Below are positions 19,501 through 37,399 of a stretch of DNA of 64,000 bases, piece by piece. Each line of letters opens with the position of its first letter. The first letter of the stretch is position 1. Position numbers and translations under genes: made by a program. The stretch is from Macrostomum hystrix (taxonomy: Eukaryota > Animalia > Platyhelminthes). Below the pieces are notes generated by a model, which saw only the letters and a program-made list of their open reading frames with translations, did no database searches and had not been told where the DNA came from. The stretch is taken from the NCBI GenBank assembly GCA_950097015.1, contig CATNEN010000039.1, positions 19,778,001-19,842,000 on the forward strand, read 5' to 3'.

Positions 19501-22500
19501 ACCAACCTGAGTGTCTGTATTTATCAACCTGAGTATCTGTAGTTATCAACCTGAGTGTCTGTATTTATCAACCTGAGTGTCTGTAGTTATCAACCTGACT
19601 GTCTGTAGTTACCAAGCTGAGTGTCTGTAGTTACCAACCTGAGTGTCTGTATTTATCAACCTGACTGTCTGTAGTTACCAACCTGAGTGTCTGTAGTTAC
19701 CAACCTGAGTGTCTGTATTTACCAACCTGAGTGTCTGTAGTTACCAACCTGAGTGTCTGTATTTATCAACCTGACTGTCTGTAGTTACCAACCTGAGTGT
19801 CTGTATTTACCAACCTGAGTGTCTGTATTTATCAACCTGAGTGTCTGTATTTATCAACCTGAGTGTCTGTATTTACCAACCTGAGTGTCTGTATTTACCA
19901 ACCTGAGTGTCTGTATTTATCAACCTGAGTGTCTGTAGTTACCAACCTGAGTGTCTGTATTTACCAACCTGAGTGTCTGTATTTATCAACCTGAGTGTCT
20001 GTATTTACCAACCTGAGTGTCTGTATTTATCAACCTGAGTGTCTGTATTTACCAACCTGAGTGTCTGTATTTATCAACCTGAGTATCTGTAGTTATCAAC
20101 CTGAGTGTCTGTATTTATCAACCTGAGTGTCTGTATTTATCAACCTGAGTGTCTGTATTTATCAACCTGAGTGTCTGTATTTATCAACCTGAGTGTCTGT
20201 ATTTACCAACCTGAGTATATGTATTTATCAAGCTGAGTGTCTTTATTTATCAAGCTGAGAATCTGTATTTATCAAGCTGAGTATCTACATTTATGAACCT
20301 GATTATACTCGTATGTCAATGTCAAACCGAGTACATGTCAAATTGAAATCCGTGGGAACCAAAAGTGTCTGATGCTATCAGCTACTCACTAGGCGAATTG
20401 GCCTCCAGTTTTAGTTTGGCCCGGTGACGGCGGCTCGACTTTCACCAGCGGTGGCAGGGCGCCTGGCAGCTGCACTGCGTCCATTTCCCGCATCATTTCT
20501 TCCTTTTTCTAAATTGATAGGCGAATTAGATCAAGTGGCTGTGAATCGGCTGTTTCATCATCGATCAATTGGAGCATGCAATCTTTATTTTATTAAAATG
20601 ATTCCCATTGAACGTTGATGAATAATCATCTAGGCCAGGTAATTTGATATTTTGAACGATTTGCCCTGGAGCAATTGCAAAACAATAGCGACAGCTTTTC
20701 GAAATTGACCGCGCCCCAAATGCTGACTGCAACAGCAATGAATTTTCTATTTTCGTTCAAATTGCGTCATTTACTTTCTTTAGCCAAACGAGAGTAGAAA
20801 AAAACAGGAGGCGGAGGGCTTGACAAGTTGACTATTTACGTTGTGAAACATTTGTCTTGAGGAAAACTGTCGCACAGGGCACCCAACCCAAAGCAGCATT
20901 TTTTTTAGTATCACAACTCAGGGCAAAATAAAAATATCAATAGCTAAAGTTTTTTTCGGCTAAACGTTGGGTAAGGCGCAAGAGCAGTGAAATATCCAGC
21001 AAACGGGCAGAGCTGGTATTGATCTCTGCGTCTGAAACTTAGTCGAAAAGTTCCGCTCTACTTGTTTTCAGCACAGTTCACAATCAGTCTGTGAGTATTT
21101 TTTTAGCACTCAACATTTTTGCTGCAACAAAAACTGTGGCAGGCAAAACGCTGAAATAGGAAAAAACGGTTTCTCATTATAAGAGTAGTCTAGAAATTGA
21201 ATTTAGGAACTCTGACGAAGAGGTCGGAAGTTCGTTCACAGCTCAATGAAGCAAAAGCAAATGTCCTTAAGCCAGAAACGTAGTTCCCTATAGTTTTTCC
21301 GTTTACCGAGCTACGCAATTGGTTCCAGCAGCCAAACTACAAAGGCCCTAGAGTCCCGATTCCCATCGTTAAGCGCTCACTCACCTCGTTCTCCTCCTTA
21401 GCCTTCTGCTCCTCCATCGCTGTCAGCTCCTGCGCATTCGCCAGATTGTCCACAGCAATGGCCAGGAAAACGTTGAGCAAAGTGTCTATAGTTGTGTTTT
21501 TGTCGCCATTGTCGTTTTTGGCGGTTTCGTTGGTTAAGGAAAATTTGGAATGAAAAATATACAACAGCGGAATCGTTTTTCAAGTTTTGAAATGGTGAAA
21601 AATAAAGCGATATACAAGCAATTAAAAATAAAAAGATAAGTGGCTTTCTTGTTTTTCATGGCATCGAAAATGAGCACTTTGAAGCAAGGCTTCAAGGACT
21701 CTATCTTCAGAATCAGATTAGACATCGAAAACTTAATTGTCAATGATTGTGCACGCTTATCCAGAGTAAGAATAATAACAGTTTAGATTGACAACAGCTG
21801 CTCAAGCAGGTATAGTTCATATAGAATGGCACACTGAGTGTTGCACTTACCTTGACTCGGAAAGATAATGAAGAAAAATAAATAGTGCAAACTAATAGTT
21901 CCAAGCAACTAAAACATTTCTATGCTAAGCGCAATGAATAAATAATAGAGATCAAGTGGTAAGAGGTGGTGGAGGGCATTCAATTAAGGATACAATTTCC
22001 AAAAAGCACTAGCAAGATAAAATAAACGGCGAATGCCATTCCCTTGCCAACGCCGCCCTGTGATCGAATCCCATAGTACATGACGAGATTCCAGTCTTCA
22101 CCAGTCAGGATCTGTGCACAAATGAGTCATGGTTAGGAACGATAGATTCTGGGTTTATTGAACAAAACTTTTTTCGCTGGCTACAAGCACCCAAAAAAGA
22201 ACTTTGACGCTTTAAAGTTCATTAGTCTGAGTCTACTAAATGTACAACTTTGCAAGATGTGTACACATCAATAAGCATTAGTAGCGATACGTAATTTACA
22301 ATGTTTAGATATTTATTTGGGCTTGTGTTAACTTTACGTCTCAGATGTATAATACTTATTGCTTTAACCGCAATCAAAATGTTAATTCGTTATTTATAAC
22401 TTTCGGTGTCTAGGTGTCTAGCTAGAAAACAAAGGTAGAACCACTCATGAAAAGTTTTATGGTAAACGTTTCCTCAACCGGGAAATAGTTCGCTTGAAAA

Positions 22501-25500
22501 TAACTTTGCTGCATTTTGTTAGCACAGTTGCTGCCACCACCGATTTCGGGTCGTTATGACTAGACGAATAGAAACAATTTTCGCGACAATACGACATGTA
22601 CTCTTATGGAAACCAATATTTTTATAACTCCATCCGTGTTGAAAATAAGCAAATACCGTAGTAAGTACATTAAAGAAAGGATACACTTTCCAAAGATCAT
22701 CAATATAACAAAATAGGCGGCGGCCCACATGCCGTTACCACCGCCATCATCTCGCTGTGAGCGGATTCCAAAATACATCAATGCGTTCCAGTCTTCGCTG
22801 GTAAGAATCTGAGCGAGAATTTCGGATAGAAGCAAAAGCAGTGTACTTCACCTCTATATAAACTTTTAGGTCACTTGAATTTCTCAAATCGTGTGTATGG
22901 CAGCGCGTTCTTAAAATAGGCTAATTAAAAATATGACAAGTGACTTACCTGGAACACAGTCAAGAGGCCTTTGACAAATGTGTCGAAGTTCTGAGCGGGT
23001 CGTCCTTCTGGGAAATTAAATCTGCAAAGCGAGAAGCGTAAGCTAATGTCTTACATTTCTATTTATTAATTATATCAACTGTTACAAAAGACTGTCGTTT
23101 CGCAATATATTTCTGTGAACTATCATTGATCACATTGAACACTTACTCGCCGCCAAAAAGTTGCATGCCGAGTAGAGCAAAAATAAGTATGAACAGAAAC
23201 AGCAGGAACAGCAGAGAAATGATGGAGCGCATAGAGCTGAGCAGGGAAATGACGAGGTTTCGCAGCGATGACCAGTATCTGAAATTTTAAAGTTGCTTTC
23301 TTGTCAAAATGTGCAAATCTAAGTTTTCTCAATGTGAACATATCAACACCTGATGCTGACAACATCCATATCTTTTTTCTTTTATAAAGTTGTTTGTACT
23401 CTCTTAAGCTCCTGCACTTGATCCCCTCTTTGATCCTGAGTACGTGAGCTAGCTTTCAGCTTTATTAGAATAAATGCTAATAAGGTCTAAAGCAGACGCA
23501 ACAATATTTTGTACTTGTTCCCTGACGCAAAGATTACGTTACGATTTCTACTAAGCCCTACTAGGCGATTTGTATTTTGATTTTTCCGCAGAGTAGAATA
23601 TGGGAAAACTTTTCACCGTCAACAACTAGCTACGGACAATCAGAGGCAGTTTGAGGTTAATAGCTTGTTTTGTCGAGTGCCGCGCATTTAAAATTAGGCC
23701 TCATTATACCTACAAGGACTTTCGTGCTCCATAATCACCTCGAAAATATGGCAGTGAACAAAAATAGGCGAATATTAGTCCATCTGAGGAGACCCGGATT
23801 CCATTGCTAACTGACCTAGTAACCTTGAAAGCTCGCAACAAGCGCAGGGCTCGCAGCGCGCTGACACCGAAGGAGGCGTCGGGTCTATAAAATTGCCACG
23901 CAATCTCTAGTGCGCTGGCAATTATCACCTGGTGGCAGCGGTGGGATTTCATGATATGTGTAGAAGGCAGAGTAGATGCTAGAAAACATGTTCTTAGTAA
24001 TGGCTGCACATCAAGTCTTGATACACATTCTTTCGCTTCGTTTTACAAGCGTAACTAATGACTATACTATTTTCATGAATTTAGTTTCGAAAAATTTTAT
24101 GGCACTTTTTTCTATCTAATAAATTTCAAATAAATACTTTAACTTGGCACAAACCTTGCACCCATCATGCTCCCGATCCAGTTTCAGTGTTTTAAACTTC
24201 CTCCGCATTGCTGGCTTCCTATTTCAGTTGGGAGGGAGTCATTTTTCTCTGGTCGAATTAACCGCCCCCTATCGGTTGCTTATCGCCGACAGCAACGCTT
24301 CCCTACGACACAAAATTGCTTACATCCTCTTGGTCGACAGTTGTGGGGTAATCTTATTAGAGGAAAAGTGTGTCCCACTTTGAGCCTCATGGGAAATCGA
24401 CTAGATGCTCTACAGAAATGGGGAGAGGGGATATCTCAGTTTCATGTGTGCATTAATGCATGGACACACCATGCCTGTCTAGATAGTTGACAACTTTCGC
24501 ACATAGGACGAGTATACACAGAAATTTTTGGCTTGCAGCTAGTCATTTTGTGAAAACACGGCTTTTTTAGAGACATTCTAGAACCGATAACTCGATCTAG
24601 TGCTGTCCGTTAGGAACCAATAGATGAAGCATTCCCCCCCCCAACAATATATAAAAGCAATCACGCGGTTAGGGAATAGAAAACAAACGCACCAACGAAA
24701 TCCAAGAGTAAAAATTAAGAAACTGTTTTTGTTACGTGTATTAAGAAATCAGAGGAAGTTTCGTGCACTATGCATTTTTTATCTTGGGTGTTAATAAATG
24801 TGCTTTTAATGAAAGCTTTGTTAAGCCAGGCCGTCATAAGATCTAGTGGGTTTAGCACACAGGCTCATTTCCAGACTTATTAAGCGGTTGCGTTGGGGAT
24901 GACATGGAGGTTGTCTAGACTTGGCAGTCTTAGCCAGGCTTGTAATACCTTGTGACCTTAAATATTCTCAATAGTCGGATACTTCTCAGGGCACTGAATC
25001 CGAAGGACTGGCCTCCGTGCATGTTTTGCCAGATAACCTCAAACAAGCTGGCAATAACAACCTGTTAAAATTATCAAGATAGCGTTTTGCACAAATGCCT
25101 GCCGAGAAACTCTTCTTAACAGTCTTGTCCGGTGAGGATTGAAAAGGCCCAACCAATGCCAAAACTTTAAACGTAAATCTGGTGTTCTGCAATTGGTTTA
25201 CAATTTTTTCGACGGTAGTTTGTACCGGTCACAATGCAATCACAAGGACAATATCACAAGCTAATAACAAAGTACACTGATATTCACAATGATGCGCAGA
25301 TAAAACAAACCGATAGGATTAATGACGAAAGACTAAACTAATAAGCGAAAATAATTTGATTAACTAGTTTCATACGGCATGCTGCTCGATCGAGCTTATG
25401 TTAGAGCGATAGTGAAATAGTCTCAGGAAGTAAACGCTCGTATACGCTCGTAAGTGTGAAATATCAAAATAAAATTGACACAAGTGTGAAGCCAATAAAC

Positions 25501-28500
25501 GTTATTTGCAACACGAAAAAATTCTAGAGCTACGTACTTCAGCTCTTTCTAGATGGGGCGCGTGCAGGAAACTTAACTTGCGATTAAGTAATTGCGAAGG
25601 CGACAGAAAAGGTGACAGAATCAAACAAAACTAATTAAGGCCACAAACATCGACATGGATAGCTCATGAATTAGGAAGCAAAGCTCCACATGCTGTCGAC
25701 CTTTGCTTTCAGACCACTTGCCTAGTTACTTTGAAAATTCGCAACAGTCTGAGCGCTCTCAAAACGCTCAGACCAAATGAAGTTAATGGGTGAAAGACGG
25801 TCCAGACTATCTCGAAGGTGCTGGCCAAAATTACCTGGAATGGTGTGCCCCAGATACGATGGCAAAGATTCAGGAACAAGCTCCGGACAAAAAATGACAA
25901 GTTTTATATAATCGAAGTCCTACACCAGTTAAAATACAAAATTCATTAACACTTCACGGTGCGGCATTTTTAGACTCATTTAGTGCTCAGAAATGCTCGA
26001 TTGTGAGGACGTAGCGCAGCAGTTTCTTTAGTAAATATATAATGCAACACGCTTTCACTTACAGTACAGTCGAAGATGTTGAAGGACGACTTGAAGTATA
26101 TCCGAATGCCTAGGCCGTACATTTTTATGCACATCTCGGACATGAAGAGACCCAGGAATACGAATTCGGCATAGTCTGAAAATAAATGAATAAATACTTT
26201 CTGGCTAATTACGGCTCGTACTTGGCAACAGTTAGTTGGGAGGCGCATCTGGATTTCGCTGGCTACTTAGCTCACACGCTCGCAGATACGGACACAGGGT
26301 GCTCACTCACTCGAAACTTAATTATTCACATTTGGCTGTAGTTGACATTTGGCAGTTGGCAGCTGGATTGCAGTATACTTTCATCAACTGATCCAGAACA
26401 GCCCACTGTCAACTGCCATCAACTGCAGGCCTTGCGTGAACTAGCCCTTATTTGCCCGCCCGCCCTTGACTTTCCGATCGTCACACAGTGTACACACTCA
26501 CTCCGTTTTGGGTTCGGCCCTCATGGTCGCAAATTGCACGAATAGCACCAAGCCCCAACTAAATTTCGGTCGCACGCCGTTCCTGCTCAGCTTCACCTCT
26601 AATCCAGAAATAGTATGTTCTAAGCACTCATTTGGGCACTTTAACTTTGACCAGATTTATATAACTTGAAAGGAATTAGAGTTAAGCTTACACAGGAAAG
26701 AGCTGAGCCAGTCCGGCTGCCGGTAGTGCTCAACAGAGACGCAGAGGGTGTTCAGAAAAACCAGGATAATGACTACCCAATAGAAGGCCTGGCTTTTCAC
26801 CATGCGCCGAATGGAATAACGGAAGCGCTTCTCGGTACGCCAGCACCAGGCGCAGCGCTTCGGTTGACGCTTCTTGCGACTGCTGCCGCCACTGGTTGGC
26901 TCGCCTAATGGTTCGATGGGTTACAATACTATAATAACAATCAGTGAACTCAAATGAGCAGTAATTTATTAGTGACTCCAAGAAAGATATAAAAATATTA
27001 CCCTTGAGAACACTCAAGCATACAAGGTGCGAGCGTACGTACGCAAGCATCTCACCCTTTAGATGGAAAATTGATAGATTAGAAAGACAAAGCAGACAAC
27101 GCTTTTCAAAAAGCGTTTCAAAAAGGAAGGAATATGGAGACGAACTTCCTAATTTATAAGCACCCGTTGAAGTCGCTTTCCATAATCGTCCATATTGGAA
27201 AACTTGGACGCTTGATTTCAGTCTTCTCGCTCTGAATAAAACTAACTCGAGTGATTCTGCAGGTAAACATGCGGTTCAGGTCCGCTATTTGCTTAGAAAA
27301 TCGCGGGAAGTATCCTTATCGAGGGAGATATTGCCTTCCAGCAGATAAGAATTAAAAATCCTTAGAAATTCGTGCAACATTAGTGGGCAGGTATGAAACT
27401 CTACATTTATTCGATTCTTAAATATACTCTTACAGATTGTTCTCTCGGATGAAAATTGCAAGTTCGTCTATAACTGATTATTACAAACTAGTGATCATAG
27501 TGCCTTATGTGTTTGCAGATTAGTAGATTAACAGGTATTAATCATCTAAAGGATGATCCAGCCGAGACACTATACTCGAGAAAATAGCATATTATTGAAG
27601 CGGCTCAAACAGGCAACTCACGGATATCATAGAGGTAGTCCTCTCCGTCTTCGCCTTGAGCCTCTCGCAGATCGGACGACTTGCTTTTAGATTTGCCGCG
27701 TTTGAAACGCCTCGATGCCATGCGGCCGCGATCTTCAGGGTGAAGAGAAAAACTTGATCACGAATTCAAGGATCTGCTACTAGTGAACTTTCTACTCCGA
27801 GGACGTTAAAACAAACTTATAAGAAATCACTGTTGCGCCAAAACGTTGGATTCTATTCTCACCTTCCATTATTTTCATCTTGACATCATCCGGCGCGCTG
27901 TCCTCGTTGAGGGTGACCTCCTCGGCTTTGCAGATCCACTCCATATAGCCGTTGAGTTCGCGCTCAATCTGCTGCTGTCGGCGCAGTTTGAGAAATGCTC
28001 GCCGATTTTCAACTCGCTCTCGCTCCTTGGCGAACTCTCTGCAAATCAGAAAAATTAAGTTTGCAATTTCGCAGCAATTTCCAACTCCGGATATCTCGGC
28101 GAGGAGCGCGATGATGTATCAAATGGACTAAAACCACTGGACATAGGTATGTTATTCAGGTACGCAGGCATAATGTCGCTCTGTGTTATGTACATCTGCC
28201 CCGATTGTCTCATTGTCGGGCAGTCGGACACTTTTACCGCGTCCAGGAGGAGGTTGACCTTCAGTGCGCATATATATGGTCTAATAATGCGGTCTCGCAC
28301 CGGATTCGAACTCAGGGACCATGATGCGAGAGTGAGACACTTATAGCCACTCCATGACTCAACCGTCCTTAACAGAAAATCAGACCTACTATTCCTGCCT
28401 AGTTCACAACGGCTCTATAAGGCATTCGATGATTCGAAATCCTTTAAGGTAGAGAATAGTTTGAGTACAACTGCGTCTCTTGGAACAGTAGCCTAGGCTG

Positions 28501-34500: not shown

Positions 34501-37399
34501 ATCTACAAGCATAATTCTACGATAAGTTATAATAAAAGTACTCATAGTTATTCGAATGTCAAATAAAAGTCTAGCAGAATAATGTTTATTGGTAAATTTT
34601 CTCCATAAAAAAGAGTATTTCGGTTATTAATAAAACGGTGCCGTGCAATCTAATTTTTGTGATAAAAAGTGTCAATCTTTCTCCGATTTTTGAGATCTGG
34701 GAGGCGACTTGTTTTTTAATTACATTTTTTGAAATGATTTGAGACGTTTAATATACAATGCTCAATGTGGATATAAAAGGTAAGAACCATTTCCTGTAGT
34801 GTCAGGATATTTGTTCGAAAACTTTTTTCTGAAACTGAAACTTAGGTTAAAATGCTTGAAACATTAAACGTTTTTAAACTTTTTTCTAGCGGTGATGGCC
34901 TCATTATCTCGATATAATTAATCATTAAAAAACAGTCACACGGCTCACACTTTTCAATAGAAAGTTAGGATTTCTCAGACTTACCCAGTGACAACAACAA
35001 CAAAGTCCATGATGTTCCAGATGTTGCGCAGGTAGGCGCCTTTGTGCATCACAAAGCCTAAGGCGACAATTTTCAGCAGGGCTTCAACGCAGAAGATGCC
35101 GAGGAAGTAGCGCTCTGTCATGTCCTGCAGATTGCGAGCACAGTAAAACATCACTTACAAGCGACCATTTAGGGCACTAAGTACATGGTTTTTCTGACTA
35201 TCCTTCAACGAGACACTCAGGACATTAAGCTACTTTGAGCATCCTTCAACGAGACACTCAGGAAATTAAGCTACATTGAGCATCCTTCAACGAGACACTC
35301 AGGACATTAAGCTACATTGAGCATCCTTCAACGAGACACTCAGGACATTAAGCTACATTGAGCATCCTTCAACGAGACACTCAGGACATTAAGCTACATT
35401 GAGCATCCTTCAACGAGACACTCAGGACATTAAGCTACATTGAGCATCCTTCAACGAGACACTCAGGACATTAGCTACATTGAGCATCCTTCAACGAGAC
35501 ACTCAGGACATTAAGCTACATTGAGCATCCTTCAACGAGACACTCAGGACATTAAGCTACCTTGAGCATCCTTCAACGAGACACTCAGGACATTAAGCTA
35601 CATTGAGCATCCTTCAACGAGACACTCAGGACATTAAGCTACATTGAGCATCCTTCAACGAGACACTCAGGACATTAAGCTATACATTGAGCATCCTTCA
35701 ACGAGACACTCAGGACATTAAGCTACATTGAGCATCCTTCAACGAGACACTCAGGACATTAAGCTACATTGAGCATCCTTCAACGAGACACTCAGGACAT
35801 TAAGCTACATTGAGCATCCTTCAACGAGACACTCAGGAAATTAAGCTACCTTGGTCATCCTTCAACGAGACACTCAGGACATTAAGCTACCTTGATCATC
35901 CTTCAACGAGACACTCAGGACATTAAGCTACCTTGATCATCCTTCAACGAGACACTCAGGACATTAAGCTACCTTGATCATCCTTCAACGAGACACTCAG
36001 GACATTAAGCTACATTGAGCATCCTTCAACGAGACACTCAGGACATTAAGCTACATTGAGCATCCTTCAATGAGACACTCAGGACATTAAGCTACATTGA
36101 GCATCCTTCAACGAGACACTCAGGACATTAAGCTACATTGAGCATCCTTCAACGAGACACTCAGGACATTAAGCTACCTTGATCATCCTTCAACGAGACA
36201 CTCAGGACATTAAGCTACATTGGTCATCCTTCAACGAGACACTCAGGACATTAAGCTACCTTGGTCATCCTTCAACGAGACACTCAGGACATTAAGCTAC
36301 CTTGATCATCCTTCAACGAGACACTCGGTAGATTAAGCTACATTGAGCATCCTTCAACGAGACACTCAGGACATTAAGCTACCTTGAGCATCCTTCAAAG
36401 AGATACTCGGTAGAAGCTAGGTTACTGACAATTCATCAGCGAGACACTAATTGTATTTAGCTACGCTAATGACCACCTTTCAAACAACAATTGGCTATAA
36501 AAAACAAAAAAACGAATTACGACTTTAAAGTGACGTCAAAGTCAGAACAGTCCACTTACCAGCTTGGTGGACAGAGGTGTTTTGTCGCCCCTGGGTAGGT
36601 GCTCTTCGGCACCGAGCACAACACAGTTGGCAATGATGGTGAGCAGCACCATGTACTCGAAGGGCGTACACAGAGAGATAAAGGCACAAATATGCCAGTT
36701 CTTGGTTAAGGAATAAACTGAGAGTTTGCTGACAGAAACACTACTGTTTTAAGACATATATTTGAATATATTTTTTTGTATAGCAAATACCCCTTTCTAC
36801 ATCTGTCTCATCTCCCATCTTCTTTTCCACACGCTGTCTTAGTCTTTTCAGTAAAAAATTTACTGGCAGCATTTTCCTAGAAACAAAACTACAAAAACTG
36901 AAATTTAAACTACAAATATTTATTTTCGATTAAAAGGATATCCCCACTCGATGATGATCTTGGCGTACTTCCTGATAATGTTCTCTTCAGAGAAGATGCA
37001 CAGGGAGCGGGTCGGCGTGTTGCCAAGGCCGGGTAGGCCCATGTTCAGGGTCCGGCGTGCGATGTTGCGCAGTGAAGCATTCTTCGAGTCGCCGCTGCCA
37101 CCGCCGCCCATGCCGCCGGCGCCTGCGCCGCCTCTGCCAGCACTGTCGTCCAGCGACTCTCCGCCGTCGACAGTCAGCGTGGCCATTCTGACAAGGTCGT
37201 TGCGACGCTGGTGCACTGTCATTGCTGGCTGGTGCGTGTTCTCTCTACTTTGGATTAGAATCTGGGCCAGAGACAAAATATACTAAACTCTAACTACGAA
37301 GCTGATTAGCGTTAATTTAGCTGCAACAATTGCTGCAGCTGCTGCTGCTTCTACCGCGGCGGCGGCTGCTGCTGCTGCTGCAGTTGCAGTTGCAGTTAG

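Follow-up and report, generated by a model that had tools for sequence, protein, structure and literature searches.

Tandem Domain II Pore Exons with U12-Type Donors in a Flatworm Cav2 Gene: A Probable Either/Or Switch Based on Spliceosome Incompatibility

Introduction

What could ensure that only one of two neighboring exons for the same pore segment of a calcium channel enters the mRNA? The question is raised by the DNA analyzed here, a window of 64,000 nt from Macrostomum hystrix, the minus strand of which carries a Cav2-type calcium-channel alpha-1 gene with the exons of domains I–IV strung along it. The first-pass annotation had proposed that the duplication of a pore exon across a U12-type intron created a built-in either/or switch. 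The exon layout, the RNA contigs, a paralogous gene, the minor-spliceosome snRNA genes and the ancestry of the intron all fit this proposal, and we think that tandem duplication combined with U2/U12 incompatibility probably makes the choice, with a probability of about 0.7; that the incompatibility is the enforcing step is what we infer from these data taken together.

The Two Pore Exons

The assignment to Cav2 is based on exon b, which scores 48–49 bits with Cav2.1–2.3 and 27–32 bits with Cav1; Cav1-like and Cav3-like loci are separate and lie elsewhere in the genome. The peptides of exons a and b align to residues 659–697 of human Cav2.2 and 653–691 of Cav2.3 (PDB alignment), a part in which the domain II P-loop, including the filter Glu, is followed by the first half of S6. 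The two paralogous exons that had been described for this segment are in place, and all of their coordinates hold (Table 1). Both are preceded by CAG and have stop-free translations with an amino-acid identity of ~61% to each other; exon a is 124 nt and exon b 118 nt long, and each starts in phase 0 and ends in phase 1, both lengths being 1 mod 3. The following exon c completes a Tyr codon. The filter Glu and the next Asp are unchanged in both exons, and the differences consist of a G>S replacement adjoining the filter Glu, the P2–S6 loop and S6 itself. Exon a reads TSEDW beside the filter Glu, has an acidic loop (RDDGGGNG) longer by two residues and carries FGK in S6 instead of FGN. We infer that channels built with exon a differ from those built with exon b in their pore properties. 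An IS4 exon pair is apparently also present in the window.

Table 1. Features of the domain II pore region in window coordinates
Feature	Position	Strand	Description and basis
Constitutive upstream exon	22949..23021	-	End of IIS5-P1 region, ...LLTVFQ; ends CAG; sequence, RNA joint 23021>23147
Upstream U2-type donor GTAAGT	22948-22943	-	Sequence
U2-type intron, upstream exon to exon a	22809..22948	-	140 nt; sequence; joint 22808>22949
Exon a, divergent pore exon	22685..22808	-	Translation, alignment to Cav2.3/Cav2.2, RNA unitig
Exon a U12-type donor GTATCCTTT	22676..22684	-	9/9 consensus matches
a-b hybrid intron	22112..22684	-	573 nt; U12 5' splice site, U2-like 3' end
TTCCTAAC / TTCCTAACC	22131..22139	-	28-20 nt 5' of exon b; strong U2-type branch point (perfect CTAAC) and U12-box look-alike with 2 mismatches
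Exon b, canonical pore exon	21994..22111	-	TGEDW ... FGN; translation, alignment, RNA
Exon b U12-type donor GTATCCTTA	21985..21993	-	8/9 consensus matches
U12-type GT-AG intron, exon b to exon c	21486..21993	-	508 nt; joints 21485>21994, GT..AG ends
U12 branch box TTCCTTAAC, exact	21533..21541	-	Sequence; exact box also in paralogue
Constitutive exon c	21385..21485	-	101 nt; second half of IIS6 and start of II-III linker

Splice Signals

The two exons combine an acceptor of one class with a donor of the other, as had been claimed. Their acceptors are pyrimidine-rich and end in CAG (pyrimidine fraction 0.73 for exon a), and no U12 branch box was found in the intron that precedes exon a. Their donors share the core GTATCCTT, exon a ending at T|GTATCCTTTC and exon b at T|GTATCCTTAA, and both match the U12 consensus /RTATCCTT(T) closely. 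Downstream there is one U12 3' end common to both exons, also in agreement with the first reading: the acceptor tatAG at 21486, with exon c starting at 21485 and an exact TTCCTTAAC box upstream. Used from exon a, this 3' end delimits an intron of 1199 nt (22684-21486) with GT..AG ends. The stretch between branch box and exon c is AG-free and both purine- and A-rich, with a pyrimidine fraction of 0.30 and a longest pyrimidine run of 2, and thus contains no pyrimidine tract.

The statement that no U12 branch point precedes exon b holds by a narrow margin: there is no exact box, but a weak look-alike, TTCCTAAC, is found there, which could in principle serve U12. Over the whole window, the counts of the 8-mers GTATCCTT and TCCTTAAC and of RTATCCT are at or below chance. 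The U12 signals, judged by consensus matching, are therefore supported by their position and conservation and not by window counts.

In mammals, the distance between the U12 branch site and the acceptor is usually ~10–20 nt. The branch A of TTCCTTAAC lies 49 nt from exon c and the corresponding one of the paralogue 32 nt from its acceptor, so that the short mammalian-type spacing is not found. This objection is softened by the N-terminal AT-AC intron, a textbook U12 intron, in which the distance is 41 nt in this gene and 33 nt in the paralogue. In the two Cav2 genes, four U12 3' ends were checked, and the long distance is present at each; the case adds evidence that U12 introns of this genome function with branch sites 30–50 nt from the acceptor.

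The genome also contains genes for minor-spliceosome snRNAs with canonical pairing boxes, namely U12 (85.7 bits), U11 (70.4) and U6atac (47.5); no U4atac was found among the 50 of 5408 candidates that were scored.

RNA Evidence

The RNA data consist of spliced assembled contigs from four runs (X1–X4), a format from which rare isoforms drop out. The four junctions that the switch predicts were looked for in these contigs, and all are present. Those of exon b, 22949>22111 and 21994>21485, occur in all four runs; those of exon a, 22949>22808 and 22685>21485, in three, the upstream one in X1, X2 and X4, and a single unitig carries exon a joined to both neighbors. Exon a is absent from the X3 contigs, and its depth is about half of that of exon b. 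Neither the a>b joint (22685>22111) nor the joint that skips both exons (22949>21485) appears in the contigs of the four runs. Depth is zero in every run over the 384 nt in the center of the a-b intron (22210-22593), with no sign there of hybrid products or intermediates. The contigs show both exons in use, one at a time.

The missing joints do not prove that such transcripts cannot be made, since contigs lose rare forms and, as each exon has a length of 1 mod 3, NMD would hide transcripts with both or with neither.

Paralogous Gene and Ancestry of the Intron

A second Cav2 gene (C10), located on another contig, keeps the exon pair (a' and b') together with the U12 donor type and the branch box. 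The donor of exon a' is the identical 9-mer GTATCCTTT and that of exon b' is GTATCCTC, both at the same codon, and the common acceptor has the exact TTCCTTAAC; since the signals match in this way, their placement is not a matter of chance. The paralogue has TTCCGCAAC at a place similar to that of TTCCTAACC. When the two genes are compared, only the U12 consensus boxes are conserved within the introns, the rest of which is unalignable. Synonymous sites are saturated (pS 0.75–0.80), whereas pN is low (exon a, 0.20; exon b, 0.07), so that selection acts on both exons and on their splice signals. Exons a and a' also have derived residues in common. By this sequence comparison, the second gene is an old, anciently diverged paralogue that retains the exon-pair design.

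Cav genes had been said to conserve a U12 intron at this IIS6 position, and for Cav2 this is borne out by unspliced ORF fragments from other animals, including vertebrate Cav2.2-like and Cav2.3-like, tapeworm and fluke ones: 75 of 79 have the donor GTATC at this codon, the reading after FGN being C-I-L in 70 and C-I-x in five. The claim does not extend to Cav1 and Cav3, whose genes in this genome have no intron at this codon. The fragments mark the U12 donor at this position as an ancestral feature of Cav2.

A protein-homologue search with a 95-aa frame around exon a gave no match in a collection of 52–166-aa candidates that excluded frames of the same genome. The first exon of P0002, a UniParc record, cannot clearly be called an orthologue of exon a, as its identity is 49% to exon a and 54% to exon b, and it may share an origin with exon a or stem from a separate duplication; if it is an orthologue, the arrangement may date far back within flatworms.

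Proposed Mechanism and Alternatives

We propose that a tandem duplication, located 5' of an ancestral U12-type intron, copied the exon that encodes the domain II filter and the outer half of IIS6, so that each copy would have kept a U2 acceptor and a U12 donor, with one U12 branch site and acceptor in common. For the upstream GTAAGT donor, the only possible partners would then be the U2 acceptors of the two exons, and for the GTATCCTT donors of both exons the U12 3' end alone. Between a and b, the intron would have no compatible pair of ends, because a U12 donor faces a U2 acceptor, and neither would the route that skips both exons, because a U2 donor faces a U12 acceptor lacking a pyrimidine tract. 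The exon lengths would provide a second safeguard, as a transcript with both exons or with neither would be frame-shifted and sent to NMD.

This second safeguard might, however, be the main one. Exclusion would in that case stem from reading frame and NMD, transcripts with both exons or with neither being made and then degraded, and the U12 donors would be inherited and non-causal. The two lengths of 1 mod 3 and the loss of rare forms from contigs are compatible with such an explanation, and lengths not divisible by three are found in 60% of human clusters of mutually exclusive exons (PMC5740500). The same gene contains, moreover, an IIS3-S4 cluster of 113-nt exons that is exclusive in the contigs and has no U12 donor. 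Against it, the a>b joint would have to be made from a GTATCC donor and a U2 acceptor, and skipping both exons from a U2 donor and the tract-less acceptor described above. Both combinations are poor splicing substrates. The zero depth in the center of the a-b intron also speaks against transcripts that are made and then removed, and we consider this explanation unlikely.

Competing RNA structures, of the docking/selector type of Dscam or ATE1, or regulators such as Nova or PTB might instead choose the exon, the splice-site classes being incidental. The window does contain a weak inverted repeat that joins the exon b donor (21981-22002) with intronic positions 21718-21739 (22 nt, 73% complementary), but a search of 21380-23030 revealed neither strong complementary elements nor several of them, and between the paralogues the introns are conserved only in the U12 consensus boxes, so that we regard this explanation as very improbable. 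It is hardly credible that exon a is noise or in decay and lacks a separate function: it is the more divergent one (its identity to vertebrate Cav2 is 56–59%, while exon b reaches 74% with Cav2.2 and Cav2.3) and is missing from the X3 contigs, but its frame is intact, it is correctly joined on both sides in three runs at about half the depth of exon b, and it is kept in the paralogue with its derived residues and a low pN against saturated synonymous sites.

Spliceosome incompatibility thus remains our preferred explanation. A further step would be that the gene yields two functionally different Cav2 pores, with the a:b ratio set per cell and minor-spliceosome activity tuning the pore of a neuron; such tuning would follow from both routes passing through the slow minor spliceosome. 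We find this extension conceivable but doubtful.

Significance

The switch would be built on an ancient minor intron of Cav2 channels, and it involves two naturally occurring Cav2 pore variants that differ beside the selectivity filter and in S6 and could be compared by electrophysiology. Macrostomum-type flatworms are amenable to RNAi, which would let the enforcement by the minor spliceosome be probed. Spliceosome incompatibility is the rarest of the mechanisms proposed for mutually exclusive exons; one survey lists a handful of human clusters, mostly in MAP kinases. In the literature, we have not found a JNK-type either/or switch based on the minor spliceosome reported for the Cav2 channel family.

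Comparison with Known Systems

Minor introns are not new to channel genes. Conserved ones have been described in voltage-gated calcium and sodium channel genes (Wu and Krainer 1999, as cited in PMC6865273 and PMC8767276), and for rat Cacna1c two are reported, introns 2 and 13; in this respect the gene studied here is similar, with one at IIS6 and the N-terminal AT-AC intron. The minor introns described in those genes are constitutive and flank a single exon, whereas here duplication seems to have turned the minor intron into a switch.

Tandem alternative exons that alter the domain II pore of invertebrate channels of the 4x6TM type are also known. Exon 15a/15b of NALCN swaps the domain II filter between EEEE and EKEE (PMC3557258) and exon 12a/12b of LCav3 swaps the domain II turret (PMC9694082). 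These swaps replace the turret or a filter residue, with a shift in Na/Ca selectivity, unlike the present pair, in which the filter Glu and the Asp are kept. The NALCN paper considers U12 sites only as a heritage common to channels and not as a splicing mechanism (PMC3557258). Within Cav2, the Drosophila gene cacophony is likewise diversified by mutually exclusive pairs, IS4A/B and I-IIA/B (PMC11828482); these affect the IS4 voltage sensor and the linker between domains I and II and not the domain II pore, and the abstract of that work makes no mention of U12 donors.

The closest parallel comes from kinases. JNK exons 6a/6b are reportedly a case treated by Letunic in 2002. In MAPK8-10, they are separated by a U2-U12 hybrid intron (Chang et al. 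2007, PMC1874599; Hatje et al. 2017, PMC5740500), and the human genes listed for such incompatibility are MAPK8, 9, 10, 14, CEP170 and CRTC1, with no calcium channel (PMC5740500). The arrangement described here agrees with that of JNK in the U2 intron upstream, the tandem homologous exons with U12 GT donors, the hybrid a-b intron and the common U12 3' end, and it agrees with MAPK8/9/10 in having the U12 site on the 3' side of the mutually exclusive exons. It differs in concerning an ion-channel pore instead of a kinase, in another phylum, in a branch site 49 nt from the acceptor, and in being known here from sequence and RNA contigs. It is a further and independent case of the JNK type, supported by RNA and retained in evolution, in another gene family and another phylum.

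The Pore Exon Pair and Its Paralogue

A calcium-channel alpha-1 gene of Cav2 type lies on the minus strand of the window, its domains I to IV encoded by successive open frames from ~37280 down to ~2300. Two tandem exons of this gene, a and b, encode alternative versions of the domain II pore and lie between an upstream exon and a common downstream exon c (see table). Both translate cleanly, and the last T of either one forms a Tyr codon with the start of exon c. Their alignment to human Cav2.2 (residues 659–697) and Cav2.3 (653–691) covers the P-loop of domain II, where the filter glutamate sits, followed by the P2-S6 loop and the first half of IIS6, and they score higher to Cav2 than to Cav1 chains. 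Exon b is the canonical copy (TGEDW...FGN), and vertebrate fragments of the Cav2.2- and Cav2.3-like kind are 74% identical to it. The divergent copy, exon a, has TSEDW, an acidic loop longer by two residues, and FGK, and its identity to the same fragments is 56–59%. The pair, its coordinates, and its flanking signals read in the sequence exactly as the first-pass annotation had described them.

Features of the Cav2 gene and its surroundings (window coordinates)
Feature	Position	Strand	Remarks
Upstream exon	end 22949	minus	...LLTVFQ, CAG/GTAAGT
Exon a	22808-22685 (124 nt)	minus	CAG before, GTATCCTTTC after
Exon b	22111-21994 (118 nt)	minus	CAG before, GTATCCTTAA after
Exon c	start 21485	minus	behind tatAG
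IIS3-S4 exons, three tandem	25834-25722, 25061-24949, 23928-23816 (113 nt each)	minus	open frames and RNA contigs
Candidate alternative IS4 exons, two	~33423-33319, ~32488-32375	minus	sequence
Candidate alternative domain III P-loop/filter exons, two	~8987-8838, ~7942-7802	minus	sequence
Candidate alternative IVS2 exons, two	~6229-6150, ~5102-5020	minus	sequence
AT-AC U12 intron	36941-36666 (276 nt)	minus	textbook; after first coding exon; GG/ATATCCTTTT at 36941, TCCTTAAC at 36712-36705, end ...gtgtAC/ at 36666
Long minisatellite arrays	60889-60181, 59379-58462, 51871-50808, 46738-45229, 44938-44141, 40178-38944, 8667-7897	–	open frames on the minus strand

With exon b as query against the window's own 220-Mb assembly, a second Cav2 gene was found on another contig, C10 (L002/L005, G000:C10:1304627-1308598) with a matching exon pair, a' and b'. 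TSEDW, RSQR, and GMWAAAYF are common to exons a' and a, and exon b' shows 90% identity to exon b. The donors of the second pair are T/GTATCCTTTG and T/GTATCCTCGA, and an exact TTCCTTAAC stands before the acceptor that they have in common. Synonymous sites between the two genes are saturated (pS of 0.75–0.80), and pN is 0.20 for a/a' and 0.07 for b/b'. The presence of the pair in both genes, the saturated pS, and the low pN argue that the exon duplication predates an old gene duplication and that both exons are under purifying selection. The introns of the two genes are otherwise unalignable, the only conserved stretches seen in them being the consensus boxes of U12-type (minor-spliceosome) introns. 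On C10, a (GACCA)n-type microsatellite adjoins exon a' directly upstream.

Splicing of the Pair in RNA

Four RNA sequencing runs (X1–X4), all from a single study, were examined over 21250–27000 as assembled contigs, a form of data in which rare variants are dropped and each contig has one depth figure. The contigs are plainly spliced RNA; their joints are minus-strand GT..AG throughout, save one GC..AG in the IIS3-S4 cluster. Joints 22949>22111 and 21994>21485, which include exon b, were present in all four runs, and joints 22949>22808 and 22685>21485, which include exon a, in three (X1, X2, and X4), where the depth of the a-form contigs was about half that of the b-form. All four junctions named in the first-pass annotation are thus found, those that include exon a among them. 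The exon-a unitig (181 nt in X4, for example) has 28–29 nt of the upstream exon at one end and of exon c at the other, the form of bubble that mutually exclusive exons should give. Neither an a-to-b joint (22685>22111) nor one skipping both exons (22949>21485) was seen in the assembled contigs of the four runs, from which rare variants are dropped, and the depth in the middle of the a-b intron (22210–22593) was zero in every run.

Minor-Spliceosome Signals

The donors of exons a and b match GTATCCTTT at 9/9 and 8/9 positions, and they make poor targets for U1: positions +4 to +6 read TCC, in place of the AGT of a U2-type (major-spliceosome) donor. The branch box before exon c is an exact TTCCTTAAC, and the stretch from this box to the acceptor is free of AG. 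The 3' end before exon c has only 30% pyrimidine in its last 30 nt, where no pyrimidine run exceeds 2 nt; at exons a and b, the acceptors are 73% and 63% pyrimidine. The 8-mers GTATCCTT and TCCTTAAC are not commoner in the window as a whole than in shuffles; the argument is one of position and conservation. Besides, the genome encodes U12 (85.7 bits), U11 (70.4), and U6atac (47.5), all above the Rfam gathering scores and with the canonical boxes GUAAGGAA, AAAAAGGG, and AAGGAGAGA. U4atac was undetected in a genome search in which 50 of 5408 candidates were scored.

One feature of U12 introns departs from the usual pattern. The branch-to-acceptor distance is usually 10–20 nt in mammals, whereas 49 nt separate the branch A from exon c, and 32 nt in the paralogue. 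The distance is also long in the AT-AC intron of the same gene (41 nt from branch A to exon) and in the equivalent intron on C10 (33 nt), and therefore it looks like a habit of the organism and no sign against U12 identity. The acceptors of the Cav1 paralogues at the position of this AT-AC intron are ordinary AG ones.

How the Choice Might Be Enforced

We think that the switch most likely works through U2/U12 incompatibility, as the first-pass annotation had proposed, with the enforcing step drawn from what is established about the two spliceosomes. The upstream U2 donor would pair solely with the acceptor of exon a or of exon b, and either U12 donor would be joined to the distal U12 3' end only, which would leave the hybrid a-b intron and the route skipping both exons with no compatible ends. 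A second safeguard comes from exon length: both exons are 1 mod 3, and double inclusion or skipping shifts the frame, so that the product would be removed by NMD.

Other means also work in the same gene, as the IIS3-S4 cluster has no U12 donor and its exons are exclusive in the contigs all the same. Its first two exons are joined to both neighbours in either/or fashion in the RNA contigs, the first having a GC donor (GCAAGT); the acceptor joint of the third was found in one run only, in a contig that continues into the downstream intron.

Incompatibility might also be leaky. The absence of a branch point before exon b, claimed in the first-pass annotation, holds for an exact U12 box, but a look-alike with two mismatches to it, TTCCTAAC, is present 28–20 nt upstream of the exon, with TTCCGCAAC similarly placed in the paralogue. 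Low-level a-to-b splicing by the minor spliceosome may thus occur. The simpler reading of TTCCTAAC is as a U2 branch point, since it holds CTAAC, a perfect match at the usual U2 distance.

As for RNA structure, no convincing competing structure was found around the exon pair. A weak inverted repeat (21718–21739/21981–22002; 22 nt, 73% complementary, core CTTAATTG/CAATTAAG) might allow the U12 donor of exon b to base-pair with sequence that lies 241 nt inside the downstream intron, and may be due to chance.

Ancestry of the U12 Intron

Exon a was searched with HMMER against 1.84 billion representative proteins, and the matches are mostly short open frames on unspliced genomic contigs. These frames read through the donor, and therefore the residues after FGN reveal its sequence. 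Among 79 such fragments, which take in the vertebrate Cav2.2- and Cav2.3-like ones and proteins of Taenia, Hymenolepis, and Paragonimus, 70 continue with C-I-L (T/GT ATC CTN), 5 with C-I-H, C-I-F, or C-I-R (GTATC), and 4 with C-K or C-E (GTAAG or GTGAA, U2-type). The idea that Cav genes conserve a U12 intron at IIS6 is thus borne out for Cav2 (GTATC in 75/79) but not for Cav genes at large. In this genome, three Cav1-like loci (L004, L006, and L007) and all four Cav3-like loci (L009–L012) have no intron at the FGN/Y codon and retain a phase-0 intron before ILT(G/Q)EDW; the partial Cav1-like match L008 stops short of that codon. The multiple Cav1-like (three or four) and Cav3-like (four) loci suggest an old large-scale duplication. 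The QNFDTFVK signature of the upstream exon is common to the Cav2 fragments of Taenia, Hymenolepis, and Paragonimus, in keeping with a flatworm (Macrostomum-type) origin.

The protein record P0002 (UniParc UPI00060F11D9, 138 aa) is an open frame in which the domain II pore exon occurs twice in tandem, with ~115 nt between the copies; C-I-L, from a GTATCCT donor, follows both. The same switch design is thus present in one other genome at least. The first exon of P0002 is no clear orthologue of exon a, so the two pairs may be of common origin or independent duplications. A word-based protein search with the exon-a frame, a test of little weight, gave no match. Another record, the stick-insect gene model P0001 (Timema bartmani CAD7447876.1), has four successive copies of the domain II pore segment ahead of domains III and IV; an artefact of assembly or annotation is the probable cause, local tandem amplification the alternative.

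Other Features of the Window

The candidate IS4 exons are reminiscent of the IS4A/B exons in fly cacophony, and the candidate domain III P-loop exons have a long minisatellite between them. The minisatellite arrays yield open frames of 100–400 codons, in several minus-strand frames, and are the source of the strong swings in GC skew along the composition profile.

Comparison with Known Systems

Minor introns are conserved in calcium and sodium channel genes, according to PMC6865273 and PMC8767276. Pore-swapping exon pairs have been reported in NALCN (PMC3557258) and Cav3 (PMC9694082), and PMC11828482 describes exon pairs in fly Cav2. Human genes with exclusion by U2/U12 incompatibility are MAPK8, 9, 10, and 14, CEP170, and CRTC1, none of them a channel (PMC5740500 supplement). 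Our full-text literature search found no published report of U2/U12 either/or pore exons in a Cav2 gene. The layout is the same as that of JNK exons 6a/6b (PMC1874599; PMC5740500), with an upstream U2 intron, two homologous exons with U12 GT donors, a hybrid intron between them (U12 5' splice site, U2 3' end), and a single downstream U12 3' end. Each ingredient is already known, and the Cav2 case is a sound, tidy example that brings no new principle and offers a possible experimental system.
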